Assembly: GCA_976226885.1 (NCBI GenBank)
Contig: OZ320318.1
Span: 69,626,001 to 69,690,000, forward strand
Length of the DNA stretch: 64,000 bases
DNA from: Iphione sp. A-MEVVRFRX5
Taxonomy: Eukaryota
Reading direction: 5' to 3'
Below, piece after piece: positions 5,390 through 55,990 of this stretch. Numbering within the stretch: position 1 is the stretch's first letter; each line of letters begins with the position of its first letter. The notes under the pieces are model-generated. The model worked only from the letters and a program-made list of their open reading frames with translations, was not told the DNA's origin and ran no database searches. A program made the translations under genes and the position numbers.

Positions 5390-5770
5390 ACGCCAGGAGA
5401 GGCACAGAGAGGGAGGGAGAGAGAGTCAGAGGGAAGGAGAGATGGAGAGAGAGGGGACAGGGGGACAAAGAAGAGAAACAGGAGGGAGAGCAGGAATGGG
5501 AGGGAGAAGGAAAGTGTGAGGGAGGTAGAGAGAGTTAGAGGGAGAGGATGAGGGACAGGGAAGGAGAGAGACAGAGAGAGTTTGGGTGAGGAGGGAAAGA
5601 TTAGAGAATAAAGGATAAAGGGGGGGGGGATAGAGAGCAGTGAGAAGAAGGGGAGAAAGAGAAGGGTAAGCAGAGAGAGGCAGAGGGAAAAGACAGGAAG
5701 AAGGGAGGAGAGAATGAAGAGAGGGAGGGAAGCAGATAGAGAGGAGGAGAGGGAGGGAAGAAGGAGGGAT
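5390..5770. repeat. GA-rich polypurine low-complexity tract
   Basis: About 380 bp almost entirely of G and A. Confidence 0.95.
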
Positions 5771-5771
5771 A

Positions 5772-5819
5772 TACATATACATCATCATTACCGATAGCGG
5801 TAATGATGATGTATATGTA
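5772..5819. repeat. Perfect 22-bp-arm palindrome
   Basis: tacatatacatcatcattaccg-atag-cggtaatgatgatgtatatgta. Confidence 0.95.
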
Positions 5820-6624
5820 CAGTCTGAAATGAAGGAAAATAGGACATAGACATTAATAAATTATAACTACAGATATCAAGCAAAAGCTTCAATTAAGATC
5901 ACAAGCCTTTGATCTAGCAGCTTCTAGTAATAATAATATCTTTTATCAATATTATCTTCATTCTTGGTGTTACTATGGTGTAGACCCCCGCAACGGACAC
6001 CCGGGCACAGCAGACAACCCCTATAATGGACGCCTTGGAAACAGTCCCAAACAAAAACAAGCAAATAATACGTTTACAACAGGCCTGACACAGCGGACAA
6101 TCATGGACAGTGGGCACCCAGCTCTGGACAGTCCGAAACACTGATTTTACAGGATTTTCAGCAGATAGACAAAGACTTCAAATTCATTTTCAAAGGTAGA
6201 CATGAATAACCACTGTGGAGAAGGTGTTGTCACGCAGATTTGGGGCTTCAGAGAGACTTCTGAAGTCATTTTGAAAGGTAGACATGAATAACTCCTTTGG
6301 ATGAGGTGTATATGATAGAGAGAGAGTGAGAAGTGAATATCATGCCAGGTTTGAACCCCAGCTACCTTGCTTAAACTTCGTAGACAGAGAGAGAAAAGGG
6401 GTAGCTCTGACACAACGAATACCCACAAAAATGGATGCTTTAGCTATGTCCATGGTGGAGGGGTTCCACTGTACTGTGAAAGAGTAATCACTGTACTGTG
6501 AAGTAGTAATCAACAATATATTCCATGGAAAATGAGCCAATCAAAACATGTAATTTATCCATGCTTTAATATATAACATGATACATTATAATGTGACATT
6601 AGTTTGTAGGCAATTTATTCACAA

Positions 6625-9600
6625 CTATCTGTACAGTTTTTGAAATGACTGCAGGAAGACCACTGGCTTCTCATAATGAGAAGATGCCTTGGACAATTTA
6701 ATGAATTATGAGTATAAAGAATGATCTCAGAGACTTTCATATAACTGAAAGAAATATTTACTTTACTTTACTTACAGTTGCTTGTTTCCCCCTCCACCTT
6801 CGTCTCTCTCTCCCCTGGCCTCTGCCTCTGTCTTCCCTTCTCCACTGGCCTCTGCCTCTGTGACTTGGCCTCTGCCTCTGTGTTTGGTGACTCCAGCGGC
6901 CTCTTTCCGGGCGGAAGAAAGGCCGCTGGAGTTCAGTTGCTCCTTGTGCAGTCGACCTGGAGTGCTGATAATAACATATTTAGATTAGAGGGGTAAACGA
7001 AAGGGAAAAAGAAAGAATGGTAGTAAGCTACCCCAGGAGGATATGGAAGATCCCTGTCATATGATAGGTGAATATATTCCTGGTAAAAGATACAATGAAA
7101 TGAAAATGAAAGGAAAGATGGAAATGTTGACTGAGTGGGGCAGACAGGAAAGTAAGAAAGGAAGAGAGAAGGAGGAAGAGACAAAAAGAGGAATACTTAT
7201 ACATATGTGACTCTTTCTGCTTATCCCTCTATATATAGATAAATCCATCGATGTGATCGACAATATTTGTAAGATCCCTCAGATGTTAGGTTAGAAAAGG
7301 GCTGTGCCAGGTGACAAGACAGGAGGGGGCCACTATATAATCAGAACTGTTGTTCCAATAATCCAGGCACAATCCCCTGGGACGGAATTTTTTTTCAGAG
7401 TAACGTCTTTCAATGATAGAGAAGTTTAGACTAATATATGACCAAAAATGTCAATGTGACCACTTATGCTCAGAACATAGAGGAGCTTGCAAAACTACAT
7501 TTGACTGTATGTACATAGATTGGGAACATAATAAAAATACATGCCTCTGTTATATGGCTAGTAATAATACTAGCCATGCGGCCAATCGTGTCAGCAGTCG
7601 GGTGGACTCCCCGGTCATCTATAAATGACCGGGGGTCCACCATCAACCCTGTAGGGTCCATGAAGGCCCGGTGTAGCCTTACACAGGCTACACCGGGCAT
7701 GTCCTCGATTTTTCTGGAAAAAAGAGAGAGAAGGCGAGCATGTTTCAGATTTAAATACACTTTATTGGTTACATTAAAAGAATTATATTTTTAATATCCC
7801 ATCATTTCCCCTAGTTATTTTCTCTATATTGTAAATTGTAATCCCTCCCTCCAATAAACAATATGATGAAAATGATAATGATACATCCACTGATAAGATA
7901 CTGTTAATAAAAAATATCATGAATTTTTGCATGTTTACAGTTATACAGGAGACTCCCTCCCTGCGGACGCGTCTCCAATGCGGACGCGTCTCAAATCCGG
8001 ACGATTTGACGCAGAACGAACTGTTTTCCTATAGTTAACCATAATGAGCTAACGTCTCGAATGCGGACGGCAAAATTTAGGGGACGCCTCCCTCTGGACA
8101 CCTCCTAGACCCCTCTCAGAAGTCATTTTCAAAGGTTTTTGAGCGAATTTGGGGTGTTGTCGCGCGAATTTGGGGCCCTAGAGAGGCTCTCACACCCTGG
8201 AGAGGGAGGTGGGAGAGGTAGGGGGTGTCAACGGCGACCTCTCTGATGTCTCTCACACCCTGGAGAGGGAGGTACACATGTAGATATAAATAACAAATTC
8301 AGTACTTTTAGGACTTTTACTGGTCAAATTCAGTACTTTTAGGACTTTTACTGGTAAAATTCAATACTTTTAGGACTTTTACTGGTCAAATTCAGTACTT
8401 TTAGGACTTTTACTGGTCAAATTCAGCACTTATTGTTGTAGAGAGAGAAGGAGAAAGGGATTTCATTTTCTAGTTTGACCCCCGGTCTGTATGTACCCCA
8501 CGTCTCCAATGCGGCCACGCCTCAAATGCGGACGATTTGAGGCAGAACGAAGGGTGTCCGGAATCGAGGGAGTCTACTGTACTTGTAATACATGCTCAGT
8601 TGACTTTGCTATAGGCAACCACTACCAGGACTTATTTTGAGTTAACAACCATTTCATTGGGGAGAACTAAACAAGATACCAAATATGGACAGAAAAGACC
8701 AATGTTTCAATAGCTGCAAATCATGAATGTAATAACTCAGTACAATGAATTCAAGACTGACTCACTGACCTGTTAAATTATAAGAAAAATTATTACCTTT
8801 TCAACACCCTCAAAGCGAGGGGCTGTACATCGAGGCGGGGGCATACAGTGGCCACCGCCACCGTCATGCCCCTCTCTTTGGCCTATATATAATGAACAGG
8901 ATAAAAAAGAAATCAATGTAAAACAGCAATAAAATACAATATATGCTTAAAGAATGTGCAAAATTTGACATAAATAACAGAAAGTAAATTGATATTATAT
9001 TCAAACAGGAATGAAAAATTAATCTATTGATTCAATAAATTTCTCAAGATTATAGCAATACATGTATTGTATACTGAAGCTCTATTTAATAGAGAGCATT
9101 AATGGCTCAGACAAAAAAAAAAATAGGCCCCTGCCACTTTTACACTGTCTGGTGCCTGCATATAATGGAGGTCAAGGTCATCTGCTAGACACTGATTATA
9201 AACAGATTATCTCTCCAATGAAAACATATTTATGCATTAATTATCGTAGCTTTGCAGTGAGTAAGGGAATTTAAATACTTTACTCACCTCCTCTGCCAGA
9301 CGGTTAATGTTCTTAAACACTTCATCTGGGTGCTTGCCCTGGGCGAGGTCATTCCCACCCAGGGCTATTACTACATGTCTGTAGTAATTGAAGTTAATCT
9401 TCGCTTTCTTAGCTGTCAAGCCAGACTGGGAGAGGTTCGCGATGCGAACCCCTTCCAGTCTGGCTATGACTGAATCACCATACACAGCTGAGACCTGCAA
9501 AAAAAAAAAGAAACATGAAAGATTGACCTCATATATATACATGTGCAACTTCAACATATGAACGACAGCAGTTTTTGTACAATAGTAGCACTTTTGACAG

Positions 9601-12600
9601 ACTAATCTCAAAGATAATTTTTGCTTAAAGTTTGGTGGAAATACATCAAATGCAAGTAAACTTATTCAGTATAAACTCTTAGAATAAATAAAGGTACTAA
9701 TTGTATGTTGCAAAACCTAAGAGGTAAGATTAGTAAGGTTAATGCAGGAAGGGTATATGGAAAATTGAAATGAAGGAGAGGGATAGTGTTCTCTAATAAC
9801 TTAACTCTTATAACTTCACAGATTTATTCTATGTTCTCTAATAGCACGGTTTAAGTAGGGAGAAAGAAGGGAAATGGTGCTGTCACCTGGGGTGAAACAG
9901 TATTCAACTAAGTGCAGATGGAGAAAGAAGAAAGTACATAAAAGTAACAAAAATGCCATCAATTAAAGGGCAACTCCACATATAATTTTCAAATTAAAAC
10001 TATACCAATAGTACTATCACATTTTCATTTGGACTTCACAAATGTTTAGCAGAATTAAAAGGTAAACACAGTAAAAGTAAAATTTAGCAGTAGAAATTAT
10101 GCAATACTAATTATGAGTTCATAACAATATATGTTAGATCACTAGTGTATTACATGCACATATTAAAATGTTAACAATTGCTTGGTCACCAAGCCCTCCT
10201 TTAGCTACTCACTGGTGTGATGTTATATTCTATTCTCAAAAAAATTTTTCCCGTCAATTATTTACTTTTTATGTATTATATATATGCTTATTATGTATAA
10301 AAAGTTTATTGCTTGTTAACCCCACTTCATATGCATGTGATTTCATTAATAGATGATAAAAATATTTTATTACTAATAATGTGACATAAAAAAGGAATAC
10401 ATAAGACTACATAAGCCTAATGCAATATTAGTACTTATAATACTACAATGAAAACATATTATAACTACATTATACTAAATTCATCTAAAAACTTAATGCA
10501 AAAGGGAAAGAATGAAGAAAATCAGCAAGTCCAATCATATTTGAAGTATGGTCTGGTTCAGTAGAGGCGTCATCATTGAGGAAGAACTGAGGGACTGATG
10601 AAAATGAAAAATATAAAGAAAACAATCAGAACAATTCAAAATGATATGACAAATCAAAACAATTCAAAACAAATCTGAATAATCAGAGTACAGTGGAGCG
10701 CCTCTAATAGGGACACCCTCTGTTCTTCATCAAACGGTCCCTATTAGAGGCTCGTCCCTATTAGAGACATTGTGGCCTGAGGCCACTCTGTAAAAATTAT
10801 CATGTAGAATAGGGTGTAAGGCCATGTTTTACTTACACACAAAAAGGACAGGGAAGTCTGGGGGAAGTCCTTGATTGAAATCTTCATGCCTCTCTCTCAT
10901 ACCTCTGATCTGTCCCTCTATCTGACACCTATGGGTATTGTCCTCCTGGCAGCTCTTTACCTCTCCATGTAGCACCTATATCTCTCACCATTGTCCTCCT
11001 GGCAGTCCTCTACCTCTCGAGGTCGCGCTAATACCTCACACTTATAGGTATTATCCTCCTGGCAGCCCTCTACCCCTCCTGGTCGCGCTTATACCTCACA
11101 CCTATGGGTATTATCCTCCTGCAGTCTCCCTACCCTTTCGGGTCACAAATATCCCTGACACTTCTGAGCTGTCCCTATGGAGGCACTTCACCCTCCAGCC
11201 TGTCCCTATTGGAGACCTTAAACATTATTATATAGGAAATATTTTGGTTCTGGCTTGAACTGTTGCTATTAGAGGCGTGTCCCTATTGGGGACGTGTCTC
11301 TATGAAGGCTCTCAACTGTATTGTAATACAGTAATCAAACATCAATGAATTTCACATTAAAGTCAAGGTAAAGGTGTGAAAAGCATGTGTCTGATGGTGT
11401 CTTCACTGTGTAATACTGTTGGATTGGAATCCATTTGTCAGGCAGGGGATAACTATCAGAATGTGTTGGGTCCTACTTGTCTATTTCAGTACTAAATAAA
11501 TAGAATTAAATCCCCTGCATGCAATAAACTACACCTTAAGCATCCACCCTTCACCTTCTGTAGATGCTTGCAAATTACAACGATTGCTCGTTTCCCCATG
11601 ATCATACTTATTGGGTGTGTGTCCAATCTCATCTTTTTAGATGTAGGGATACCCTACACACATGCCAACCGTGTGAAACAGGCCTCTGTATAAATGTGAT
11701 AAACTAAGTGACATCCTGTGTAGTGCCCCACTAACTCAATTCAGTGCATAAGAAATATACATCAATATTCAACAAACCACACCATGTGCACTTATCTTAA
11801 CCTCCAACACTACCTACATGACAAGCTTTTCAATAGAGCATCATTGTGTAGGAGACATGCTAAGTGATAGTCTGTGTGAAGTCCTACTCATCTTCTACTA
11901 CTCAAAGTTGATACTTATGGCAGTGGAGAGGGTTATGGGGCTTCCAATATCATCTTCTGTAGAATAACTAAGTTTGTCTGGTTGGCATGGTTGAGATAGG
12001 AGGTGGCTAATGATCGTGAACCTGAATTTGGGCTGATCTATGCCTTGGTAATTAGCTTTCTTAAAGTTTCCGAATGTGGAAAATCTGCATGGTTTTATCA
12101 CCCAAGGCAAAGTATATCAATTGGTATGGGAAATACTTTTACTTACTATTGATGCCGAGTCCTGTGGTGGTGTTGGTGGTGGTGGTGGCAGGGTCGGAGT
12201 AGCTCCAGGGTTGCTGATCTCCTATATGACAACAATGAAGGCAAAATAGTTATTATTGTCATCTAGATTCCGTAGTGCAGATGCTTGCAAAGTACAATTC
12301 CTGACACCTTACCCACATTACTAATAATGTGACATAAAAGCAAGGAATACATAAGACTACATGAGCCTAATGTAAAATTAGTACTTATAATACTACAATG
12401 AAAACATATTGTTCACCTCGAATGAAGTGACATGACTCCTTGAGGTACAGTTTGACTGAAGTTTAGTCCTAGAAGGAACAGATAAGAATGGCAACAAACC
12501 CCACCAGCTCAGTCCCTTATATAGTCAGTGTTAACCTGGCTGGAGAGGCACACACTCTGGCAGACTCTGGCAACTCCGGGCCAACCACGGCCAACGACGG

Positions 12601-15600
12601 TGAAATGTATGACTCCACTGAACTCCAGCCGGAGTTAACACTAAACTTGGGCACAGGCCCAACACTGCCCCCCTCTAAGCTGGCTCAGTCCCTGAGTCCA
12701 ATTATGACAAAGAACATTACCAACCACATGTATTTTTTCAACTTGTCATTCAAAATGTCTAAGGCAACAAGGCCGGCACAGGCCAACAACTTCAACTGCT
12801 GGTAAGGGGGAACCAGTACAGGTTCTCAAACTTATAACAACCCCCAGGCCAGTACAGGCCTAACATGTACTTTATCCCTGAAAATACTGCAACGATAATC
12901 AGGTCAGAAGAGACCAACAGAGGTACATGTAACTGCAACAGTGGGACCAATACCAGTCCCCAACTGAACTTCTTAGTAACTGGGGGTCAGTACAGACCCC
13001 CAACACTTTCAGAGGGAGGGTCCAGTACAGGTCCCTGAGCAACCTCTACCTAGGTGTGTGGGGTGGGTGCCAATTTGATGATGTAGTCCGCCTCCCACCG
13101 CACAGTCGTCCGCATTTCATCAAGACGGGTAGCTGCAAACTGCCAGTAGCATCGCTTAAAAGCACTCCTTGTTCGTCTCTGCTGCTGTGAGGCCCAGCCT
13201 CTAGTCCTGCAGCATCCTGTGGTGTGGGGGGTCCGGAGCCACAGCTCGGCAGATTGCCCGTGCGTAACCCAGGCACCCCCCTCAATGGCCTCCACTTCAG
13301 TCCTCCCCTCGGCTGTGGCCAGGTGCCAACTGAGTGGGGGCTCTGCTGTTGACATTAACACCAGTCCTCCTGCCCACTGGCAGACCGCAGCAGGTACCTC
13401 CGGGTCAGCCCACCTCAGCTGACGTCTGGCAATCCTTGCCACCGGCATACGATTGCTCAAGGGGCGGTCCACTCGGCTCGCAGACGCCTGGGTCTGCCTC
13501 TGCTGTTCCGTCCCCATGGTTGCAGCTATGGTAGTCTTGGTGTTCCTAGCTGGAGTTAACGTTGCCAGCGGGGGTGTCATCCTGGTAATCACCATGACTG
13601 GTGTGGCGCCCAACTCAGGGGGCACCAACCGCTGTCCTAGGTCCACCTGGGGGGTCCTTGGCCTAACTGGTGCTGACATGGTGCCCGACCTGGTGGGGGT
13701 ACAGCCTGGGTAATCGCAGTGGTGGCAACAGGTGTGGCGCCCAACTCGACGGCGCCAACTGACGTCCCAGGTCCGCCTGGGAGGTTCCTTGGCCTTGCCA
13801 ACACCAGCTGGGTGCCATGGGCCAACAACTGTGGAGGAGGGGCAGCCTGAGCAGCTATGGCAGCAGTAACGGGTGTGGAGCCCGGCTTGTGGGGGGTTAA
13901 CCGTTGTCCCAGATCCACCTGCACAGTCCCTGGACTGGCCATCTCGGTTCCATCCTTCTGCATGGCCATGGCCTCATCCGTCGACTTCCCGCCGGTCTCC
14001 GCCCGGGTGGTTGGTGGAGGCAGGGTGGACCAGACGGTTCCTCCTCGTCCTCCGGCCGGACCATGGCCGGAGCAGCTGCTGGAGTCACAGCTGGACCCCA
14101 GGCGGAGTCCGCAGCTGTCTCCAGCCGGTCTCTGGCAGAGAGGGTTCCTCTTCCATCACTGTCTCCTTCTACCACCTCCGCGATGGTGGCCAGCAGGGCC
14201 ACCACCTCGGTCTCTAACGGTGTATCAAGCATGGGTGGAGCTCCACTGTCCTGACAGTCCTCGAAGTGGGGAGTGTTGAGGGACTGGGCATAACGGACGT
14301 TGCCCACCACGGTGCCCTGGTCTTCGCCCAGCCCTCGCTCTGACGGCAACACAGCTCTACCACCATTTCATTCTCTTGCTGTGCCCGCTTCAGGTCTTCT
14401 GCTGCCCCGGCCACTGTCCGGACGACGGCCACGGTCCCCTGCAGCACTTCCTCTTCTTCTGCCTCGGCTCCATCATGGCCACAGTGAGGGCAGACCTGGC
14501 GTGACAGCCCATCAACATTGCCGTGCTTCCTGCCTGGTTGGTAGACAATCCCCAAATTGTAGCAGTGAATTTCTTCCAACCATCTTGCCAGTTGTCCCTG
14601 GGGCTCACTGAAGTTGCACAGCCATCAAAGGAAGCTGTGGTCCGTCCTGATGATGATATGTGCACCCCCAACATAAGACCTGAAATTCCTTAGGCTGAAA
14701 ATGACTGCCAACAGCTCCTTGCAGGTCACACAGTAGTTCCATTCGGGTCGGGTAAGGCTGCGGCTGGCATACACCAGGACCCGCTCCTCCCCATCCTGCT
14801 CCTGAGACAAGACCGCTCCATTCTCTTGTGCTAAGGCTTCAGTGTCCAGGGTCATCTGTCCTTCTGCCCACGCGTAGGTTAAGATCAAGGCTGTAACCAA
14901 CTTCTCCTTGAGGGTCTGGAAAGCGTCCTCTCACTCTGACGTCCAATAGAAGGCCTCCCCCTTCTCCAGCAAATAATGTGGCGGGCTGGCAGCGTTGGAT
15001 GAAGCTGCGGTAGCATGAACACAGACCAATGAAGCCCATCAACTCCATGAGACACTGTGGTGCTGGCCAATCTTCTACCACTCGGACCTTGGACTGGGTC
15101 CAGATTGATCCCTGCTGCCGATACTCGGTGCCCCAGGTACACAACCTCAGTCTGGAACAGCTGGCATTCTCTGGTTTGATCTTCAGGCCTGCCTCCCTCA
15201 GCTGCTGGAATACTTCCGCCAGTTGGTCCATCATATCAGGGACCAAATAGAGTAGGGAGGGCCTTCCAAATAGACCAGACAAGTGGTCCCCACGAAACCC
15301 CAGAGCACCACCTCCATGAGCCGCTCAAACGTGGATGGGGCATCGCAAAGCCCCAACAGCATCACCTTGAATTGGTAGAGGCCTCCTGGAGTACACATTG
15401 CAGTCTTTTCTGGATTTGCATGGTGCATCTGGACCTGCCAGTATCCACTGGCCAAGTCCAGAGCTGAAAAGTACTTCGCCCCTTCAAGGGCATCCAGGGT
15501 GTCGCCGATCCTTGGAAGTGGGTATGCATCCTTCTTTGTGATTCTGTTCAGGGCCCAGTAGTCGATACAGAATCGCCACGACTGGTCCTTCTTCTTCACT

Positions 15601-18600
15601 AGGACGACAGGAGATGCCCAGGGGCTGGTCAACGGTTCCAGTACTCCCCAATCCAACATCTTCTGGACTTCCCGCTGCACAGCTGCATGCTTGGATGGGG
15701 GCAGTCGACGAACTCGATGCGTATTGGTGCATGCCCATGGACATCAACCCTGTGCTGCACCTCTCCGGTACTACCAAGTGGCTCTCCCTCCTCCTGAAAG
15801 CACATCCGATGCTCCTCCAACATCTGGCCCACCAGGCCATGCTCTTCTCCCGTCAAGATCCCCAGGAGACTTGCCAGCAAGCACTGCTCCAGACTCCGTG
15901 GTCTCCTTGACCTCCTGCGCCAACAGCACTTGACCACACTCTTCCGGAAGTTCCACCAACTGTGTTTGCCCCACTACAGTTCCTCACCACAGACAGCAAC
16001 CCAGGTATCAAGGGTTAGCCGACTCCACCACTCTGGTAGTTGCTCCCACGTCGTACAGCATCCTCGCCAGGTTCATTCGAGAATGGCCTGCCCACTCAGG
16101 GGCAGCCTCCAGCAGCACCACTCCTCTGATGCCCTTCAGTTCTGGCCATCTCACTCTGGCCTCATTGGTGCTCCTTCCTTCAAGCTGGCACCCAAACTCA
16201 GAGAGCTGCCCTCTCGGTGTCCACTTGTGCCTTCCACTGCCTCAGGGTGTCGAGGCCCAGGATCACTGGACAGTCGATGCTTGCAACCCACGCCTCCACC
16301 CAGAGCTCCACTTCTCTAGTCCCTTATATAGTCAGTGTTAACCTGGCTGGAGAGGCACAAACTCCAGCAGACTCTGGCAATTCTGGGCAAACCCCGGCGA
16401 AATGTATGACTCTGCTGAACTCCGGTCTGAGTTAACAATAAACTTGGGCACAGGCCAAACACTATGATAAAAATACTATTTTGTAAGAAAAAATAAGAAC
16501 AATACAAAAAAAAAATGTAGTTTTGCAACCCAGATAATGAAGGAAAACACGACATAGACGTGCAGTTCAAGAAAACTTGTTCCAACCTGTATGCTGCCAC
16601 TTTGTGGTGGTTTTGTCTAATTACAGGTGATAAACTAAGTGAAATCCTTTGTAGCGCTCAACTAATTCAATTCAGTGCATAAGGAAAGACGCAGCAGGTC
16701 CCCAGTACAGGGGCCAGAGAGTACAGCTAGCTTTACCAAATACTTGGGTGTCCCCAAGTGACACAATAAATCCCCAGTACAGGGGTCAGAGAGTACAGCT
16801 AACTTTACCAGATGTTTGGGTGTCCCCAAACGACACAGCAGGTCCCCAGTACAGGGGCCAGTGAGTACACTAACTACACTACCTACTACAATAGAACCTC
16901 ATTATATAGGTGACATGCTAAGTGATAGTCTGTGTGAAGTCCTACTTATCTTCTTCAGTACTTAAAAATCAAAATAAATGTAGATGCATCCATCCTATGG
17001 CTCAAAGTTAATGCTTGTGGTAGTGGGAAGGGTTATGGGGCTTCCAATATCATCTTCTGTAGAATCACTAAGTTTGGCTGGTTGGCATGGTTGAGATAGG
17101 AGGTGGCTAGTGATCGTGAACCTTAATTTGGGCTGACCTACGCGTTGGTTATTAGATTTCTTAAAATTTCCACATGTGGTAAATCTGCCTGGTTTAATCA
17201 CACAAGGCATAGTATATCAATTGGTATGGGAAATACTTTTACTTACTCTCAATCCCAAGACCTGGGGTGGTGGTGGTGTTGGCTCAGCCCCAGTGACTCC
17301 AAGGTTGCTGGGTATGTCCTGTATGACAACAATGCAGACAAAATAGTTATTATTATCATCTAGGTGCAGTTTTGCAGATGCTTGCAAAGTACAACTACTG
17401 ACACATTGCCCACATGCTAACCATGTCAAATGAACATCTTTATATAGTTGACACAGTAAGTGGTAGTCTATGTGAGGCCCTACTCATCCAATTCGGTACT
17501 CAAAAAAAAGAAAATAAATAAATGCCTTACATGAAGCAAAGTACACAAGATGCATCCACCCTAACCTCTCACCCCACTCACATCTCTTACTTGTCAACCA
17601 AAACTCATTATACAGGGCCAGTGCTAAGTGATAGTCTGTGTGGGACCATACTCTTCAGTACTAAATAGAAATAAATCCCCTGCATGTAACAAACTACACT
17701 TTATGCACTTGCCCTAGTCCCCCCTCCCACACACACACACTCATAGCACACCACTTACTATATATGCATAGAAATATATGGTTGTGTGGAGCAGTAATTT
17801 AGTCTGCACAAAATTACTCAGCATGCTGAGCATGTAAGTTTACTCCTCACATAAGCTCTGCACATGATGCTTGTGTGCATTTATACTCAGTTGCGTTGTT
17901 ACCACTCAGGAATAAACATTTAAACTTTACTTGGTAGTCTGATTCAACTATGTTAAGGTCTGGCCATAATAATAAGTACACACTGAGGTAGTAATACAGA
18001 TGTACTGGCACTGACTGCACCTACCCCTACCCGAACTGGCAAATGTACATCACATAATTTATATGCTGGGAAATATATAAACACACTGAGGTAGTAATAC
18101 AGATGTATTGGTAGTGACTTTACCTACCCCTAACCTGTCACACGCACAGCACATAATATGTATACAGAAAAATATATCTCCACACTGAGATAGTACAACA
18201 TACATGTACAGGTACTCTCACTGACCTCACCTACCCTTACCCTGAGCATCACATGCACAACACATAATTTATATGCAGAGAAATATATCTATACACTGAG
18301 GCGGTAATACAGATGTACAGCATAGACTTCACCTACCCCTACCATAACTGACATACATCCACCACATAATATGCATGCACAGAGAAATTTACACACTGAG
18401 ATAGTACAACATACATGTACAGGTACTCTCACTGACCTCACCTATCCCTACCCTGAGAATCACATGCACAAAACATAATTTATATGCTGGGAAATATATA
18501 AACACACTTAGGTAGTAATACAGATGTATTGGTAGTGACTTTACCTATACCTACCCTGACACATGCACACCACATAATATATATGTAGAAAAAAATATAT

Positions 18601-20477
18601 TTACACACTGAGATAGTACTACATACATGCACAGGTACTCTCACTGACTTCACCTACCCCTACCCTGAGCATTACATGCACAAAACATAATTTATATGTT
18701 GGGAAATATATAAACACACTGAGGTAGTAATACAGATGTATTGGTAGTGACTTTACCTACCCCTACCCTGACATATGCACACTGCATAATATATATGTAG
18801 AAAAAAATATATTTACACACTGAGATAGTACTACATACATGCACAGGTACTCTCACTGACTTCACCTTCCCCTGCCCTGAGCATCACATGCACAACACGT
18901 AATTTATATGCAGAGAACAATTACAAATATCGTTTGTTGCTAATTTTCTCTTCAAAGGAATAGTTTCATTTAGCCGTTCTGTGAACAACAATCTTTCTCA
19001 CTCTGTCAGCATTGGAATGCATTTTACAGCATAAAAATTGGATCATTATTGATGAAAGAGTAATGAAGATCTCCACTTCCTGTGTTGCCTGCCATTTCAA
19101 ACTAGAAGCAGGAAGATATAGGACAGAGTATGTCAATTGGTATGGGAAGTACTTTTACTTACCCTGGATGTGGAGGCATGAGGTGGTGGTGGTGGTGGAG
19201 TTGCATTTTCATTGGTCTTCTGCTCCTGTATGACAACAATGCAGGCAAAAAAGTTATTATCAACTTTATGTTCAGCAGTGCAGATGCTTGCGAAAAACAA
19301 CTACTGACAACCTAACCACATGCTAACCTTGTCAAATGAGCATCTTTATATAGTTGAGTAGCTAAGTGATAGTCTATGTGAGGCCCTACTCATCCACTGA
19401 CTTCACCTGCCCCTACCCTGACTATCAAATACACTCAATATATAATTTATATGCAGAGAAATATATCTACACACTGAGTTAATAATACTGATGTATTGGC
19501 AGTGACCTCACCTAAACTAACCCTTACTATCACATGCAGAACACATAATCTATATGCAGAAAAATATATCTCCACACTGAGGTAGTAATACAGATGTATT
19601 GGCAGTGACTTTACCTACCCCTACCTTGCCACATGCACAGCACATAATATGTATGCAGAAAAATATATCTCCACACTGAGGTATATATGCACAGGTACTG
19701 TCACTGACCTCACCTACCCCCACCCTGACCATCACATGCACAACACATAATTTATATGCAAAGAAATATATCCACACTCCGAGCTAGTAACAGAGATGTA
19801 TTGGCAGTGACTTTACCTACCCCTACCATAACTGACACACATCCACCACGTAATATGCATGCACAGAGAAATATACTTACACACTGAGATAGTACAACAT
19901 ACATGTACAGGTACTGTCACTGACCTCACCTACCCCTACCCTGAGCATCACTTGCACAACACATAATTTATATGCAGAGAAATATATCTACACACTGAGG
20001 TAGTAATACAGATGTACAGCACTGACTTCACCTAATCCTACCCTGTCAGATGCACACTGCATAATATATATGCAGAAAAATATATCTCCACACGGAGATA
20101 GTACTACATAGTTGACAAAATCACTGGTAATCGACTGTAATCCCCTACCCCTACCCTGTCTGTTACATGTACACATTACACAGATCTTTTGTTGCTAATT
20201 TTCTCCTAAAAGGAATAGTTTCATGTAGTCATTCTGTGAACAACAATCTTTCTCACTCTGTCAGCATTTGAATGCATTTTACAGCATAAAAATCGGATCA
20301 TTATTGATGAAATACTAATGAAGATCTCAACTTACAAACTAGAAGCGGGAAGATACAAGACAGAGTATGTCAATTGGTATGGGAAGTACTTTTACTTACC
20401 CTTGGTGAGGAGGCATGAGGTGGTGGTGGTGGTGATGTTGCGAGAGGCAAAGACTCACTTTCCATGGTCTTCTGCTC
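6625..20477 (-). CDS. Multi-exon gene, N-terminus not found: Pro-rich repeat exons + SGNH/GDSL hydrolase-fold domain + RG-rich tail (about 320 aa rebuilt)
   Basis: Minus-strand exons: 20477-20400, 19225-19163, 17318-17247, 12221-12147, 9494-9288, 8882-8797, 7713-7545, 6964-6776, 6648-6625. Phases are compatible and the frame is open to TAG at 6627-6625, with AATAAA at 6619-6614. All introns are GT-AG except one GC-AG (donor after 7545). Confidence 0.75.
6776..6964 (-). CDS. Arg/Gly-rich exon
   Basis: Boundaries ttattatcag|CAC ... ACT|gtaagt, 189 nt, phase 0/0. HSRSTAQGATELQRPFFRPERGRWSHQTQRQRPSHRGRGQWRREDRGRGQGRERRRWRGKQAT. Confidence 0.65.
7545..7713 (-). CDS. SGNH domain exon C (block V-like, DDRGVHP)
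   Basis: Acceptor ctctcttttttccag|A AAA ATC. KIEDMPGVACVRLHRAFMDPTGLMVDPRSFIDDRGVHPTADTIGRMASIITSHITE. The 3' end depends on a GC donor (AG|gcatgt). Confidence 0.75.
7946..8579. mobile_element. pogo/Tigger-type MITE
   Basis: TA|caggagactccctc ... gagggagtctactg|TA. Subterminal gcggacgcgtctc repeats and internal 31-bp tandem repeats. Confidence 0.85.
8797..8882 (-). CDS. SGNH domain exon B
   Basis: Boundaries tatatag|GCC ... AAA AG|gtaata. AKERGMTVAVATVCPRLDVQPLALRVLK. Phase 0 to 2 bridges exons A and C exactly. Confidence 0.8.
9288..9494 (-). CDS. SGNH domain exon A (blocks I-III)
   Basis: Boundaries ttttttgcag|GTC ... GAG|gtgagt, 207 nt. VSAVYGDSVIARLEGVRIANLSQSG...HVVIALGGNDL carries the GDS, SG and GGND motifs. 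Confidence 0.85.
10691..11318. mobile_element. Tc1/mariner-pogo-type MITE with internal ~60-bp repeats
   Basis: TA|cagtggagcgcctct ... ggctctcaactg|TA, with repeated ccctattagag motifs. Confidence 0.7.
12410..16461 (-). mobile_element. Degenerate Ty3/Gypsy LTR retrotransposon with internal deletions
   Basis: RT (WASPVVLVKKKD...RFCIDY..LN..TKKDAYPLPRI...ALDLASGYWQV, 15231-15680) and RNase H (14625-14900). 3' LTR about 12410-12664 (TG...CA) is preceded on the minus strand by the PPT agaggggggcag (12665-12676). Partial 5' LTR at 16318-16461. Many frameshifts; no recognisable integrase core, gag or PBS. Confidence 0.9.
16690..16870. repeat. Short tandem repeat, about 77 bp x 2.5
   Basis: tccccagtacagggg(c/t)cag(a/t)gagtaca occurs three times. 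Confidence 0.8.
17970..18915. repeat. Diverged ~105-bp satellite with ~211-bp dimeric higher-order structure (same family as 31650-32603)
   Basis: Alternating units gaggtagtaatacagatgtattgg and gagatagtac(a/t)acatacatg. Shared core ctttacctacccctaccctgac. Confidence 0.85.
19405..20165. repeat. Second diverged array of the same satellite
   Basis: Repeated acactgaggtagtaatacagatgta ... cctacccctaccctg units. Confidence 0.85.
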
Positions 20478-33607: not shown

Positions 33608-34540
33608 CACCACCCCAGCTGACTCGCGATGTACGTCGGGACCGTTTTTGGACATAAATGATGTAGATAGAGTAGAATGATGTAAACCATGTTATTCCTT
33701 GCATCCTTAGCTTTCATTTGGTGGTTGAATCGTAAAAATCGGACCAATATTAAGAAAGTTGGGTTACTTACAGTTCTGTCAGCCATTTCAAATCGAAGCG
33801 GGAAGAAACAGGAACAGGAATTAGTGGGTGAACTGGTACCCTTACCTCGATTTCGTCCGCCGATGTGAACTAGTGTCTACCGTGTCGCCGATTTTGGCGC
33901 TAATAACAGAGCTGGGCACCCTAGAAAAAGTTGTCGCATTTATTAAAGTCTCTGTCACAAATTAAAACAGTATCTCAGTACTAAATCAGGAGAAAAAGAA
34001 AGATGTCGCATTGTTTAATCCCTGTGTCGCACGTTTTTTGCGAAATGGGACAGGTTTCCCAGCCCTTTAATTGTGGCCGAGTCAGTTGTAAACAACCAGC
34101 GCGATACGAAAATACTGGTCAGCTACTAAACTATGTGTGTAAACATGCTAACTCTACTTCAGCCATATTGAATAAGTTATCTCCTCATACTCCCGGACAG
34201 CTGAGCATTCAGTTAAGTTTCTTGTACAATTTACATCGTGTCCAGACATGAACAAATGTCTGTATTGATCTTTCGATCAGAGTATGTCGCTATAGGTGTG
34301 GCACATTCCCTGTTCATTGTAATTCAAATATAGACGAAAGGACAAAGAGCTTGCCGTTGGCCGTAGTTAGCTGCCGATCGGCAGTAAGTTCGTGCCTGAT
34401 CATCACTCGTTTCACTGGAACGGCGGGCGTTTGTAACCTGCGCATGTGTTTACTTTCTGTCTTTACTTTTGGCCTAGGTCGTCAGCTTGTTTCTAGTAAT
34501 ATTTAGGTTGTAGTTCAGCTCGCTCTTTTGTTGAGAGTCG
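33608..34540. promoter_or_regulatory. CpG-rich, probably bidirectional promoter with a putative non-coding first exon on the minus strand (donor after 33846)
   Basis: CpG density is visibly above the flanks. The minus strand reads ...cggcggacgaaatcgag|gtaagg at 33846/33845. The zinc-finger ORF starts about 700 bp away on the + strand. Confidence 0.5.
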
Positions 34541-34542
34541 AC

Positions 34543-36354
34543 ATGACACCGCCAATTTTCAGCAGCGTCAAGGCGTGTTTATCAAAAGATTTCATGATTT
34601 ACATGCGCAGTACCAAAGGTGTTGGTTTTGAGTCGGACCTTCTCGTTGATATCAGAAAATTGGTGAAAGTAGTTAACATGGTGGATGGTGGTACTCTTGA
34701 AGTACAGGGCGAGTGGGATGCAGTCAGTAGTGTACATAGTTTTCTCGTAAAAACGTGTCATGGCAGATCGGAAAATAGAGGACGAACGAGCTTGAATCCT
34801 TCCAGACTTGGCGCCACTGACCGGGAACCCGACAGTATTTCAGATGTCTCCGTGTTCTCTGCATCTTCATCACCTAATAAATATAATGCTAGACGCTTGT
34901 CTGTAGATCCATCGATGGCATCGGTAAATCTAGCACATGGGTTTGCTGATAGTCCTGTAGTCTCTGATAATTCAGCTGTATCGAAAGAGTTTCAAAGTAG
35001 CAGTTTATTCACCGATATTTATCCTGGCCCTCTTCTGCCCCTGCAAGATGGCCAAGAAAGTCAAAAGTTGGCGGAGAAATCCGATCTCTTTGAAGAGTTG
35101 GAGTCAGTCTCTCAAACTGATAAATTATTTCGATGTGATCATTGCAGGTATGTTGCCGCTGGAAAGACTTCTCTTGGTGTTCATGTACGAAGGAAGCATG
35201 GCAGTGCGAAATTAATGTGTTCGGAATGCAACTCGTTATTTTCACTTCAGAAGGATTTGAATAAACATAATAAAACTGTTCATTCGACCAGTCTCTGCTT
35301 TGAATGTAACTTATGCACGTATAAAAGTAGAACAAAACAAGGATTGGAGGAACATGCTCTACGAAATCACAAAGATAGGAGACACCATTGTAAAATTTGT
35401 CAGAAATCTTTTGGTTTAAAACGAGACTTGAAGAAACACATGACTGTCCATGATAGTTTAGGATTTGAGTGCAGTGAATGTCATAAATCGTACTCAACGA
35501 AGTGGTTTTTAAAGGAACACCAGAAGTGCCATACAGAGGAGCATTCTAAGTTTGGTCACATCTGTGAGAAATGTGGTCGGGGGTTTTCGAGCAAGCAGTT
35601 GGTGTTGAGTCATGTAGCTTCAGTTCACGAAGATCGGCCTACAAAGTATAGTTGTAAAATTTGTGGGGCTAAGTTCAAACAAAAGAGAAACCTAAATGAC
35701 CATGAATTAGGCCATTCCAATATTAAACCTCATAAATGTGGTATATGCAGTAAAGAATTTCAACATAGTAGCAGCTTGGCCAAACATAAAGTAATACATA
35801 AGACCCCTGAAAAACCTAAGGTATGTTTGACCACTGGAAAAAATATGCCGTCACCATCTGAAGTTAAGAAATATTCATGTAGTGTATGTAGCAAAATATT
35901 TTCACAAAAGCAAGCGCTAGTACGTCATGAAAGAATACACACAGGTGCTAAGCCATTTACATGTACTACTTGTGGTAAAAACTTCGCTGACAGCTCAGTA
36001 TTAAGGCGCCATAATATTGCCAAGCATAAGGATATATATGTAGTTGATAAGCCTGGAAAAGCAAGCAGCCTAACCAATAAAAAAAATGCTTTGAAAGGAG
36101 AAGATGCCGTCATAACAGCTACTGTTGAAAGACACAATAAAAAGGTGAACAGTACAACATTGCAAAATATTGAAATAATCCGTAATGAAACATTCCTTCA
36201 TGGTCAATATCCCAGTAAGGAGAGGGAGATGGTTACAACCATTCATGACGTCAGTGTACAGTATTCTCCAACAAATCCCTCATTATCTGACTTGGGCTTA
36301 CGTCTGTCACATGTACCTCACATATGGACAGGGAATGCTCAACAAGCAGAATAA
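34543..36354 (+). CDS. C2H2 zinc-finger protein with 10 fingers and an N-terminal globular region
   Basis: Intact intronless ORF; first ATG at 34543 (the track starts at TTG 34528). Ten C-x2-C-x12-H-x3/4-H fingers, including an HTGAKPF linker. CpG-rich upstream region. Confidence 0.9.
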   Translation: MTPPIFSSVKACLSKDFMIYMRSTKGVGFESDLLVDIRKLVKVVNMVDGGTLEVQGEWDAVSSVHSFLVKTCHGRSENRGRTSLNPSRLGATDREPDSISDVSVFSASSSPNKYNARRLSVDPSMASVNLAHGFADSPVVSDNSAVSKEFQSSSLFTDIYPGPLLPLQDGQESQKLAEKSDLFEELESVSQTDKLFRCDHCRYVAAGKTSLGVHVRRKHGSAKLMCSECNSLFSLQKDLNKHNKTVHSTSLCFECNLCTYKSRTKQGLEEHALRNHKDRRHHCKICQKSFGLKRDLKKHMTVHDSLGFECSECHKSYSTKWFLKEHQKCHTEEHSKFGHICEKCGRGFSSKQLVLSHVASVHEDRPTKYSCKICGAKFKQKRNLNDHELGHSNIKPHKCGICSKEFQHSSSLAKHKVIHKTPEKPKVCLTTGKNMPSPSEVKKYSCSVCSKIFSQKQALVRHERIHTGAKPFTCTTCGKNFADSSVLRRHNIAKHKDIYVVDKPGKASSLTNKKNALKGEDAVITATVERHNKKVNSTTLQNIEIIRNETFLHGQYPSKEREMVTTIHDVSVQYSPTNPSLSDLGLRLSHVPHIWTGNAQQAE

Positions 36355-51162: not shown

Positions 51163-54100
51163 TTAGTCTTCCTTGGATCCTAGTGCTGTTGGCTCAGAAA
51201 CATTACAGAAGATTTGACTCCTCCTCACCCACAGGATGTCCCTCCTCCTGGGACATCTGAGGATATCTGGTGATCCTTCCCTGGAAAGAAGGAATGTCAC
51301 CCTAACTTCTTCCTTTTTCTTCTGTTCTCTTCTTGATGGTCTCAACTTTGCCAAAGTAGGCACTACCAGAGCAGAGTGCTGCAACAAATGCCCCAGTCTT
51401 GGTGATGATGCTCTCCTGGTGTTTAGTAAGAGCCACAGTGGTCCATCCTGGGCAGGGATCTTCTCCTGAATGGCATCCTTGGCAGAAGCAGTTGGTGTCT
51501 CTGATTGCAATAACTCCAGGCTCCTTCTGCATCACTGCATGTACAGTCATGGCGCCCTTGGTTGTCTTCAGTGACACATCACTCAAGAGGTCTGCTGCCC
51601 TGTCAACATCCTCTTGTGTGAAGATGTGGCTGGTGATCTTTGTGGGATTTTCCTTGGTGAGCCACTCATGGAACTGGTCAACACTGGAAATTACTGCTTT
51701 ACCCTGTCTCACAGCATCATCAACCATTCTTTTTATGGTTCCTCTGATCCCATCACATGGCCCCTTACCATGTCCCACCTCATGGTAGGACCATGTGACG
51801 GACCAGCGGAACAGATGGGCGTTGTTAGCAATAAAGTAAAAAATCACCTTATTTCTATACTGACTGCTTGGGCCATCAGTCACATAGTGCACCACTTCCA
51901 CTGGTGCAGACAACTTGTACAACTCTTCATTTATGGATTTGAGGATGGCAGTCACTGTGGTTTGTCCATGAGAAGAAACATCACTGACATATACTCCACT
52001 CTTGTAAGTGATGGTGGAGCATTCCTTCCAGTAGATAACTACTGGATGTAATGTTACCTGCACTTGTCACCAGTAGGCAGACTGAACTTCTTCAACATTC
52101 TTACATGTATAATTTTCAGAGAAGTCCATGAACACTATGGTCTCTCTTGGCTGCAAGGACTCTTTCAACATCTTCAAGGCTTGGTACTGCACATGGATTC
52201 TCTCAACATGGCCCCTGAAGTGATGCAGGTCTGTCAGCAGCTGCTCCCTGAATTGATCTTGTGGTACTTGTTCCTCATGCACCAGACATAAGACCTATCT
52301 TCTGATGTCCTCTCCTTGTCCCAGTTGTAATAGGTGACAGTTTCTTTCAAGAAGCATGCTCCCACTATTTTACTGTCAGTCTTCTCTTTGATGAGGGCAT
52401 CAGGGTTGGTGTTGATTCCTCCTGCTTTGAGCTTTAGAACAATATTCTGATGATATATACATAAAGACAACTGGACCGGCTGGCAAAGGCTGTCAGTTTA
52501 ACATGGGCTGGCCACATTTTGCAGAACACAGGCTTCTCATGATGTTCAGCTGTAAACTTCCTCCACAAGTTGTGGAGGTAGTCTGTCAAGACTCTTGTCT
52601 GCACCCTCAATCCCTTTGACAGTCTGGTACTGTCCTTCTTTCCTGGCTTGATCCTGGAGTTACCATCCCTTTCAAGGAAGGCCACAACACAGTCTTGCAG
52701 CTGACTCCTCATGGCTGGCATACTTCTCTTGCTTGTTGTTCTTTTTCCGCTGAGGTGATTCCTGTTGACTCCTGTATGCAGCCCCACATACCTGAGGATA
52801 TGGTACTTTCTGGCTTGAAAGTACTCTGGTGATGGAATCCTACTTTGTTTTCCTCCTGTCAGCCCCAGCCTTGATTTGAGCCATCAGGACGTGGTGGATA
52901 GTTAGTTTCCTCAGGAGGCCTTGGTGGCTGATGGGGTCAAGGCCTGCCTTCATTGGGTCTTGAAGAGCACTCTCCTTGGTTTTTTTTTTCCTTCTCTCTG
53001 CTTGGATCTTCTTGAATTTTTGCTTCATCCTCTGAAGCCTCTTCTGGAGCTTCCAAACTTGCCTGGTTGACTTCTTGTTGGCATCTCGAAGTTTGGAGAT
53101 CCTCCTGTGGGCTTTAGCCACAGCCCTGCTGGTCCTTTTTCGTGAGTGATCATGTACACTCCTGCAGGTGACAAAGTTGAACTTGACTGCCAGGGTAGCT
53201 GGAGTACTGGTGCCACTTGAGGTTGAAGGAGTAAGATCAGCTGGAGGAGTAAGAGAAGTACTGGCAGAAGTAGGAGTAGACTGGAGAACCTGCTGCTCTT
53301 GCTACTTTTGGAGTTGCTCTGCCTCTTTCCTTGCCTTTAATTTTGCCCTCCTTCTCTCCTGAGCCAGTCTGTTCCTCTCTCTTCTCAGGAGGAGGTCAAC
53401 CGTACTGGCCATTTGTGAAGCTGGGATGTGGTACCTATCATGTAAAGTATGTCATACATCCTTTGATATTCGCTCAGCAAAACGGTCAAAATCGTCACCT
53501 CGAGGTGCTCAGACTAGCTCAAAGGCCCTGTCTGCGTCTGATCTACTCACACTTCGCTAATTGCAATTAGCACCCTGGGCTTTTGGCGGGCTGGCGCTGC
53601 ATACATAAAGGGGTGGTTAGGGGAAGGGAAAATCAGTTCATATCCTGACACGAACAAGACAACATGCCTGTGGCCACCAAGACAACCTCGAAGCGCAGAG
53701 ACCTTACTCTCAAGGAGAAGGTTGATATCATCAAGCATAGCCCCAATAGGAGTCTGCGACAGCTTGCTGAGCAATTTGGAGTGGGCAAAACTCAAGTTGG
53801 CGGAATTCTCAAGAGGAAAGCGGAAATTTTGAATGATTACCAGGGTTGTGCCGACCCTAATGCCAAACGGAGATGCCTATCTGCTGTTTCGTCCACGCTC
53901 GATGAAAAGGTCTTCGCTTGGTTCTCAAGAATCCGATCTATGAACGTCTCAGTTTCTGGGCCTATGTTATGTACGAGGGTGTTGGCAGTATCCAAGGAAC
54001 TCGGCATGGATGACTTCAAGGCGTCATCTGGATGGCTTACAAGATTCAAGAAGCGCCATTGCATTGGCACATTCAAAGTGGTTGGTGAACATGCTGGCGT

Positions 54101-55990
54101 GGACGAAGCAGCAGTGGAGACGTGGCTCGAAAAACTCCCCACCATACTGAAGGGATATTCACCAAGGGACATTTTCAACGTTGACGAATCCGGCCTCTTC
54201 TAGCGAGCATTACTAGATCGTACCCTTAGTGTTAGGGGGTCCGACGTCTCCGCCCACAAGAAATCAAAGGAACGCATCACAGCGATGTTCTGCGTCAACG
54301 CACTGGGCGAATTCCAGAAGACGCTGGTGATAGGCAAAGCAGCGAGGCCCAGGTGTTGGCGTAACGTCAAGGACCTAAATGCACTGCCTGTTGTGTGGCG
54401 AAGCAATAAGCGTGCATGGATGACGACTGTCCTATTCGAAGAATGGCTTCACTCTTTCAACCGAAAAATGCGTGCTCAGGGTCGTCAGGTCTGCTTGATA
54501 ATGGATAATGCCCCCTCTCACCCAGGAGGCTTGAAATTGTCCAATGTCAAGGTTGTCTTCCTCCCACCCAATGCCACTTCAGTCCTTCAGCCCTTGGACC
54601 AAGGAATAATCCAAGCGGTGAAACTCCAGTACAGGAAATCACTCCTGGAATATGTTGTCTCCAGGCTTGATGAGAATGACCCCAAGGCAGCAGTGGCATC
54701 GGTGGACATGCAGCTAGTGGTCAACTGGCTGAATGCTGCTGTGAAGTCAGTGAAGCCCACCACTGTGGAGGGCTGCTTCATCCGGTCAGGTATCAGGCCA
54801 GTGCCTGATGATGAAGAGAGGCTGACCTCCCCACCCCAGCTGGATGATGAACCACTGCTGACCCTGCTGCAGAAGATCCAAGAGGGCATCCCGGATGAGT
54901 CCAGGATGACACCAGATGAATACCAGGCCTTGGATGAGGATGTACCCACTGAGAGTCCTCAAGAAGAAGACTGGGCAGAGGATGAGGAGGAGGAGCAGGA
55001 AGAGGTGGAGGTGGAGGTGGAAGTGGAGAAGTCTGACATGACAGACTCTCAAGTCCAGGAAATGCTCCAGAAACTGAAAAAGCATTTCCTGGCAAAGGGA
55101 GACATTGACTGTGTGGATCTATTGGCTCCCTTGCAGCAATGCCATGCATCCAGATCAATTGCAAGGAAGGTTGTACAGCCCACCATTTCTAGCTTTTTTA
55201 AGAAGTAAATTGTCTCTTACCATGTTCATTATGTTTATTTATTGATGAATAAAATGTCTAAACTAATGGTATTGTCTTTGGTCTGTTCACCATTTGTAGA
55301 GAGAGAGAGAGAGAGAGGGGGAGTTCTGCAATGCGGACGCGTCTCCAATGCGGACGGTTTGGGGAAGAACGGAGGGTGTCCGGAATTGAGGGAGTCTACT
55401 GTATTTAATTTTGGGTGGATACATTTTTATACAATAATTATTTTATTTAATTTCATCTTACTCTTGTGTACAGTATGGATTTTTTTTGTGAATAACACTA
55501 TGAAGCACATACTTAGTGGATGCCTTAGCAGAGAGATACACCCCGACATATATATGCAGTGTATCCTCAGTATGCAGTGTATCCTCAGGCAGAGAGATAC
55601 ACCCCAACTCCAAGGAGTTAAAAATAGTAAATATTAAAATTCAATTTGTATTTTTCTTAAAAGTACTCCATGCATACATGTAAATACTTTATGATAACTT
55701 TTGGCGCTTTCTTCTTGCCAGGCTTTACATTCAGTGATTTTCCAAATTCCTAGGGATTTACATTCATCTATTCCTACAGATACAGACCAAAGTGTTGCAC
55801 ACATATTTCAATTCCTATTTCAATAAATATTTATAAGGTAATTATAAATGTTATCATTCAAATACTATTAAGAAAAATGTTCTTTTACTAACTTCATCAC
55901 TCTTTGTGACTCTTTACTCTTCCATTCTGCTGCATCTGAGCCTTTCTTCTTCATTGCCCTATAATCTTTGGAGATGTCAGCCATGGACTT
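51163..55990 (-). mobile_element. Fragmented DNA-transposon gene, Sola-like assignment tentative, interrupted by a Tigger-like element
   Basis: Motifs VFMDFSENY, QSAYW..QVTLHP, TDGPSSQYRNK and EVGHGKGPCDG..GTIKR (51302-52282). Basic coiled N-terminal pieces at 52840-53400 and 55880-55990. Confidence 0.65.
53664..55208 (+). pseudogene. pogo/Tigger (CENP-B-like HTH + DDE_1) transposase with one in-frame TAG
   Basis: ORFs 53664-54203 and 54285-55208 are in the same frame (DESGLF*RALLDRT). Catalytic D residues in DESG, MDNAPSH and PLDQGII. Acidic tail. Right TIR gagggagtctactg|TA ends at 55401. Confidence 0.92.

Follow-up and report, generated by a model that had tools for sequence, protein, structure and literature searches.

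Near-perfect hairpins chained through the coding exons of a putative SGNH-like esterase gene in the annelid Iphione sp.

We examined 64,000 nucleotides (nt) of Iphione sp. A-MEVVRFRX5, positions 69,626,001 to 69,690,000 of the forward strand of contig OZ320318.1 (GenBank assembly GCA_976226885.1). This whole stretch, called the window here, holds a putative gene with an SGNH-like product whose coding exons are packed with near-perfect hairpins, while its introns are not. GT-AG borders and reading phase outline four coding exons on the minus strand (9494-9288, 8882-8797, 7713-7541, and 6956-6772), with 216 codons from exon A onward and mutually compatible splice phases. The GT-AG introns and the nuclear-type transposon neighbors set the locus apart from mitochondrial genes. 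An earlier note on this DNA had described four hairpins in the gene. Splice sites and reading phase correct two of its points: the gene is read on the minus strand, and exon C measures 173 nt and not 169. The parts of the gene model, in the order of transcription, are as follows.

9288 to 9494, minus strand: exon A, 207 nt, encoding VSAVYGDS...GGND...AEE, which corresponds to SGNH blocks I to III; a T-rich tract and a CAG acceptor stand before it, and its donor is GTGAGT.
8883 to 9287, minus strand: intron 1, used as a control for folding.
8797 to 8882, minus strand: exon B, 86 nt, encoding AKERGMTVAVATVCPRLDVQPLALRVLK plus 2 nt; acceptor TATAG, donor GTAATA.
7714 to 8796, minus strand: intron 2, with a foldback or miniature inverted-repeat transposable element (MITE)-like insert that contains 31-nt tandem repeats, and with no tight hairpins of the exon type.
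7541 to 7713, minus strand: exon C, 173 nt, encoding KIEDMPGVAC...DDRGVHPTADTIGRMASIITSHITEA, including a block V-like motif; its acceptor is TTCCAG and its donor, a weak one, GTATTT.
6957 to 7540, minus strand: intron 3, used as a control for folding.
6772 to 6956, minus strand: putative last coding exon (RG exon), an RG- and EA-rich tail with a TAA stop at 6774-6772.

The ends of this model carry alternatives. Exon A may follow an upstream exon, or it may begin without a splice from an in-frame ATG at 9557. The frame of exon C could continue to a stop at 7470, in which case the RG exon would be noncoding; the last exon is called coding on the basis of its open frame and splice phase only. 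A putative 3′ untranslated region (UTR) would extend to an AATAAA at 6619-6614. The G+C content is 50 to 62% in the exons versus 29 to 41% in the introns.

Eleven stems lie in the four exons. They have 6 to 25 pairs each, loops of 3 to 6 nt except in one, and folding free energies (dG) of −7 to −43 kcal/mol.

9415 to 9470, minus strand: hairpin A1, 25 pairs (24 Watson-Crick, 1 G·U), 3-nt loop, dG −42.6, encoding VIARLEGVRIANLSQSGLT.
9367 to 9388, minus strand: hairpin A2, 9 base pairs (bp), perfect, 4-nt loop, encoding NYYRHVVI.
9336 to 9365, minus strand: hairpin A3, 12 pairs (2 G·U), 6-nt loop, dG −24.4, encoding ALGGNDLAQG.
9297 to 9328, minus strand: hairpin A4, two stacked 6-bp helices, weak, dG −8.2.
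8838 to 8872, minus strand: hairpin B1, 15 pairs (2 G·U), 4-nt loop, dG −27.5.
8802 to 8825, minus strand: hairpin B2, 9 pairs, 5-nt loop, dG −11.6.
7666 to 7698, minus strand: hairpin C1, 14 bp, perfect, 5-nt loop, dG −30.2, encoding MPGVACVRLHRA.
7642 to 7661, minus strand: hairpin C2, small, 7 pairs, absent from the earlier list.
7601 to 7641, minus strand: hairpin C3, 18 pairs with a one-base bulge, dG −34.3.
7554 to 7577, minus strand: hairpin C4, 10 bp, perfect, 4-nt loop, encoding MASIITSH.
6890 to 6932, minus strand: hairpin R1, 19 pairs including a 13-bp perfect core, 4-nt loop, dG −33.1.

All four hairpins of the earlier note exist where it had placed them, and those it gave as perfect in exon C, 14 bp at 7666-7698 and 10 bp at 7554-7577, are both perfect. 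The stem at 7601-7641 does have a single bulge, with 18 pairs (one of them G·U) in place of the 17 bp reported, and the perfect 13 bp reported for the RG exon belong to a longer stem of 19 pairs over 6890-6932. The note had also put about 100 of 169 nt of exon C in hairpins; the majority held, while the figures become 118 of 173 nt once the extra stem at 7661-7642 is included. Exons A and B, which had been overlooked, are packed in the same way as exon C (140 of 207 and 59 of 86 nt in hairpins), and the last exon has 43 of its approximately 180 nt in hairpins. Across the 64-kb window there are 12 perfect stems of 10 bp or longer, 5 of which fall inside the approximately 650 nt of these exons. 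The stems showed no similarity to one another or to the rest of the window, and we dropped the idea of a repeated hairpin element on the lack of mutual similarity.

The earlier note had proposed comparing fold stability with shuffles that preserve dinucleotides or codons. By this comparison the structure is non-random, and its stability did not fall within the shuffle distribution. In the codon-preserving shuffles (300 shuffles), the protein was kept and synonymous codons were permuted or resampled. Exon A folded with a z score of −11.3 against dinucleotide shuffles and −8.2 to −9.4 against codon-preserving shuffles; the corresponding values were −4.3 and −2.5 to −4.3 for exon B and −10.0 and −6.5 to −8.4 for exon C. 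None of the 300 codon-preserving shuffles reached the observed energy of exon A, B, or C, and the folding energies of exons A and C lay 40 to 47 kcal/mol under those of the shuffles. The RG exon as a whole reached a z of −2.3 against dinucleotide shuffles and was not significant against codon-preserving shuffles; here the single stem alone is exceptional (120-nt windows, z of −4.9 and −5.4). These results show that the structure of the exons is independent of protein sequence and codon usage.

A sliding scan of the 64 kb found z below −5 in 17 of 1,207 windows of 120 nt; 14 of these 17 lie at 5.7 to 10.8 kb, and 10 are on the exons of the gene. Introns 1 and 3 folded like random sequence (z of −0.90 and −0.41), and the wholly intronic windows (n = 43) had a mean z of −0.24. 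Five control coding regions in the window, comprising a MULE transposase, a C2H2 zinc-finger open reading frame (ORF), two pogo-type transposase ORFs, and gypsy-type pol frames, had mean z scores of −0.5 to +0.2. Since both the introns and the coding controls are ordinary, the signal is not general to coding sequence, G+C content, or genome region. All 11 stems are wholly exonic, and none of the 11 straddles a splice site. Pairing between neighboring exon ends, tested as two separate strands, did not go beyond that of shuffles, and we therefore dropped the possibility that the hairpins arise only after splicing. The structure is thus restricted to the exons. For a nuclear gene, exons packed with hairpins beside introns that lack them are very unusual.

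Profile and protein searches were made exon by exon. Exon A matched the Pfam family Lipase_GDSL_2 with an E value of 9e-4 to 2e-3 (19 to 20 bits, under the gathering cutoff of 32.9), and it aligned with E. coli thioesterase I (TesA-like) over 47 residues around the GGND block. A search of solved structures gave weak matches of the TesA type for exon A (E of ~0.4) and nothing meaningful for exon C; exons B and C individually had no profile match. A resemblance to the OSK domain was faint (E of 0.06 to 0.1). The block I nucleophile motif is present as VYGDSV at the opening of exon A, and blocks II (SQSG) and III (LGGND) align with the matching blocks of thioesterase I, so that GDS, SQSG, and GGND are arranged as in SGNH proteins. 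A plausible strand segment comes from exon B and GVHP from exon C. The block V region of exon C reads DDRGVHPT, in which the His is present and the nearest Asp lies four residues before it, compared with three in DxxH. The gene product likely has an SGNH-like esterase fold, and the best reading of the gene would be a single-copy, spliced, lineage-restricted SGNH-like esterase. It is like the SGNH/GDSL hydrolases, including the esterases of non-long-terminal-repeat (non-LTR) retrotransposons (PMC3905857) and the OSK domain, in having GDS, a block II Gly, GGND, and a His-bearing block V-like motif in order. It is unlike them in that its match is under the Pfam gathering score and its Asp-His spacing is one residue longer than that of DxxH.

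The same features can be read another way, as a hairpin-rich noncoding or decaying locus that is not a working protein gene, its open frames and SGNH-like motifs being remnants or chance products. The sub-threshold Pfam score coming from exon A only, the extra residue in the block V-like motif (D-x-x-x-H), the weak donor of exon C, a start codon with only candidates, and the open frames on the opposite strand, which palindromes imply, would all suit such a locus. Against this, four segments are open with compatible splice phases and GT-AG borders; GDS, SQSG, GGND, and the block V-like GVHP stand in the right order and spacing; and exon A aligns with thioesterase I over those 47 residues. The plus-strand frames match no family, a result that also led us to drop plus-strand coding. 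We regard a nonfunctional locus as improbable.

Strong secondary structure normally conflicts with protein coding. At this locus both arms of the stems are coding, and conserved motifs lie inside them. A1 carries the block II SQSG in its 3′ arm, A3 the block III GGND in its 5′ arm and loop, and C3 the catalytic-type motif DDRGVH in its 3′ arm, opposite a 5′ arm that encodes VDPRSF. With a motif in one arm, the variable residues beside it are the reverse-complement reading of that motif. The protein sequence itself, beyond the choice of codons, is fitted to pairing. Pairs in each of the three phases are present, most often those of the in-frame antisense class (78 of 174 pairs).

One explanation for such a coding sequence is inheritance from a mobile or foreign source that favored structure, either a retroelement esterase ORF or a horizontal transfer, with introns gained later between the stems. 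The difference in G+C content between exons and introns is in keeping with it, as is the fact that the best of the weak matches are bacterial TesA-type enzymes. The interval between GDS and block II is short, a feature of the esterases of long interspersed nuclear elements (LINEs), and would also suit it. It is opposed by the lack of a relative in any collection searched, retroelement and bacterial esterases included. An exhaustive phmmer search of 1.84 billion representative proteins gave no match to exon A at E values up to 1e-3, so that nothing above roughly 40% identity to it exists in that set. A word-index protein search, limited to candidates of 68 to 217 amino acids (aa), gave no matches, neither metagenome contigs nor viral contigs (the latter queried with exons A and C) held a relative, and there is no second copy of the gene within the window. 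Moreover, such perfect stems would not last long unmaintained, and by a rough estimate that takes coverage as roughly 65%, the chance that three randomly placed introns all avoid the stems is about 4%. We consider this legacy quite unlikely.

The hairpins might instead be specific RNA signals, namely, docking sites for double-stranded-RNA-binding proteins in localization or decay, targets of the protein's own RG-rich tail, or substrates of Dicer/Argonaute or ADAR. Several stems, at 18 to 25 bp, have the size of short-hairpin RNAs, and the RG-rich tail and the faint OSK-domain resemblance would fit a role of this kind. No loop or stem motif is held in common, though, and ADAR or Drosha would call for longer stems. 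The best matches in Rfam 15 were generic microRNA models at 23 to 35 bits, far under gathering scores of 66 to 96, and Rfam thus gives no support to a putative small-RNA precursor or structured-RNA relic, two of the possibilities raised in the earlier note. Dedicated signals of this sort seem very unlikely.

We tentatively favor, at somewhat less than an even chance, an origin of the stems by local inverted copying (template switching), with the stems then kept through selection on the mature mRNA. Template switching during DNA replication would copy one arm inversely from the other and so both make and repair perfect stems whose loops are short. The stems would then be retained in the exons of this single gene by selection on the mature mRNA, in which both arms lie. 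With about 11 stem-loops, the mRNA would be compact, resistant to nucleases and to targeting by small RNAs, and slow or helicase dependent in translation, and the coding sequence would have been remodeled into a tight chain of hairpins whose two arms still encode protein, catalytic-type motifs included. The copying step is suggested as the likely origin by the perfect Watson-Crick arms, the short loops, and the confinement to contiguous DNA (PMC8794818, PMC5453318, PMC8604942). The stems show the hallmarks of a template switch: perfect arms, a short spacer, and arms in contiguous DNA with no exon junction crossed. The restriction to the exons of one gene requires a second factor besides template switching. 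In its fuller form, that amino acids and codons of a spliced nuclear gene were jointly reshaped into a near-perfect hairpin chain with the mRNA under selection (a “super-structured” mRNA), the proposal is possible but doubtful.

The main rival leaves out the RNA. Here quasi-palindromes would be made or kept by template switching or by conversion of one arm to the other, at the DNA level only, as neutral or selfish structures. Exonic stems would persist because deletion of a whole hairpin would destroy the protein, and intronic ones would be deleted or decay, an argument with a precedent in hairworm mitochondria (PMC6649704). Pairing in the stems is 93% Watson-Crick. When the exon C region was folded with DNA parameters, it had a z of −10.8 and was as exceptional as with RNA parameters. 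The stems are essentially DNA palindromes, and their near-pure Watson-Crick pairing and very short loops indicate template switching at least as much as RNA selection. On the side of selection on the mRNA, the sense strand folds better than the antisense strand by 5 to 13 kcal/mol in all four exons, and among individual hairpins it does so in 9 to 12 of 13.

Several results weigh against selection on the mRNA, and some of them favor this rival. A count of G·U pairs on helices defined from the sense strand (13 G·U versus 1 A·C) is biased; a strand-neutral recount, used in its place, gave 181 shared Watson-Crick pairs with 10 sense G·U versus 4 antisense, and this strand bias was not significant (P = 0.18). 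RNA selection constrained by coding should leave many wobbles or mismatches, and the near-perfect stems look more like the outcome of DNA-level homogenization. There is no stable tetraloop or common loop sequence among the exon stems. Finally, two similar palindromes, comparable in perfection, lie in the noncoding flanks.

5770 to 5821, no strand assigned: palindrome, 24 bp, near-perfect, with CAT/ATG-rich arms and the loop CTAT, z of −16.7.
10700 to 10751, no strand assigned: stem, 15 bp, perfect, 22-nt loop, about 1.2 kb upstream of exon A.

A process confined to the DNA would nevertheless have to be gene specific, given that the window's other coding regions fold ordinarily. It would also have to account for the 2 kb of introns in the locus that are without such stems, and for the absence of stems that straddle exon edges, which would be equally protected from deletion. 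We judge a purely DNA-level origin unlikely, if the most serious of the alternatives, and retain template switching combined with selection on the mature mRNA as the tentative explanation.

Dense perfect inverted repeats within genes have so far been described mainly in hairworm mitochondria, and the locus is a variant of this rare, already known “coding palindrome” phenomenon. The coding palindromes in the mitochondria of hairworms (Nematomorpha) have been proposed to be neutral or selfish, to be kept perfect by conversion, and to survive where deletion is lethal (PMC6649704). As in those palindromes, near-perfect inverted repeats lie in coding sequence, conserved protein is encoded from both arms, and degeneracy optimizes pairing; template switching or conversion has been proposed as their maintenance (PMC6649704). 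The hairworm palindromes differ in being organellar, intron free, up to 284 bp long, and scattered over many genes, whereas the stems described here have 6 to 25 bp and are densely chained in the exons of one spliced, nuclear-type annelid gene with stem-free introns.

Template-switch mutations are known to create or perfect hairpins (PMC8794818, PMC5453318) and to alter coding genes in yeast (PMC8604942). The likeness to this process lies in perfect stems that can form in one step, short spacers, and contiguous DNA, and several neighboring codons can be changed together. The reported cases are isolated, with one stem per gene, as opposed to 11 stems over approximately 60 to 70% of the coding sequence of the domain here. 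In-frame palindromic insertion elements, the Rickettsia palindromic elements (RPEs) and the yeast mitochondrial “byp” elements (summarized in PMC6649704), likewise place hairpin-forming DNA within genes. Those elements are repeated mobile families inserted between conserved segments of proteins, unlike the present stems, which are mutually dissimilar and contain the conserved motifs.

Should a super-structured nuclear mRNA be borne out, this would be the first case of dense coding palindromes outside organelles and a natural system for studying how ribosomes, helicases, and the splicing machinery handle heavily structured coding RNA. It would bear on template switching as a way to rewrite a protein several codons at once and on the natural tuning of mRNA life span and output by coding structure, a property already exploited in designed mRNAs. 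If the process is instead neutral and acts at the DNA level, it would extend “parasitic” coding palindromes to nuclear genomes.

The two flanking palindromes have different surroundings. The one at 5770-5821 is outside the gene model, approximately 0.8 kb past the poly(A) signal, and adjoins a 400-nt CT-rich low-complexity tract. We rejected it as a fifth coding exon: the RG exon stops at TAA, AATAAA follows about 150 nt on, and the frames downstream are CT-rich and of low complexity. The stem at 10700-10751 has no frame open throughout and may represent a 5′ UTR exon or have nothing to do with the gene. The segment at 10690-10790 also contains a mini-hairpin of 6 bp (GTGGCC/GGCCAC), TCTAATAGGGAC as a direct repeat, and a closing helix (AGTGG/CCACT), and the splice-acceptor-like TTTTTACAG stands before it.

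Within intron 2, the insert at 7950-8570 has inverted arms at approximately 7950-8030 and 8500-8570 around four to five of the 31-nt tandem repeats (8295-8449). Upstream of the gene, a 60-nt unit occurs in four tandem copies at 10919-11162, with a Pro-rich plus-strand reading (PPGSPLPL). An LTR retrotransposon occupies 11485-17700 on the minus strand, with direct repeats of approximately 1.2 kb lying 5.1 kb apart and a decayed gypsy-type pol split over several frames. Upstream “poly-Pro” exons of the SGNH gene are doubtful, since this element fills 11.5 to 17.7 kb. The C2H2 control ORF, at 34528-36351 of the window, is intronless and encodes 608 aa, and the pogo/Tc5-type transposase (CENP-B/HTH plus DDE_1) at 53664-55205, likewise a coding control, is broken into two frames. 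A satellite-like array at 17948-20170 is made up of units of approximately 105 and 212 nt, whose copies are 63 to 93% identical.

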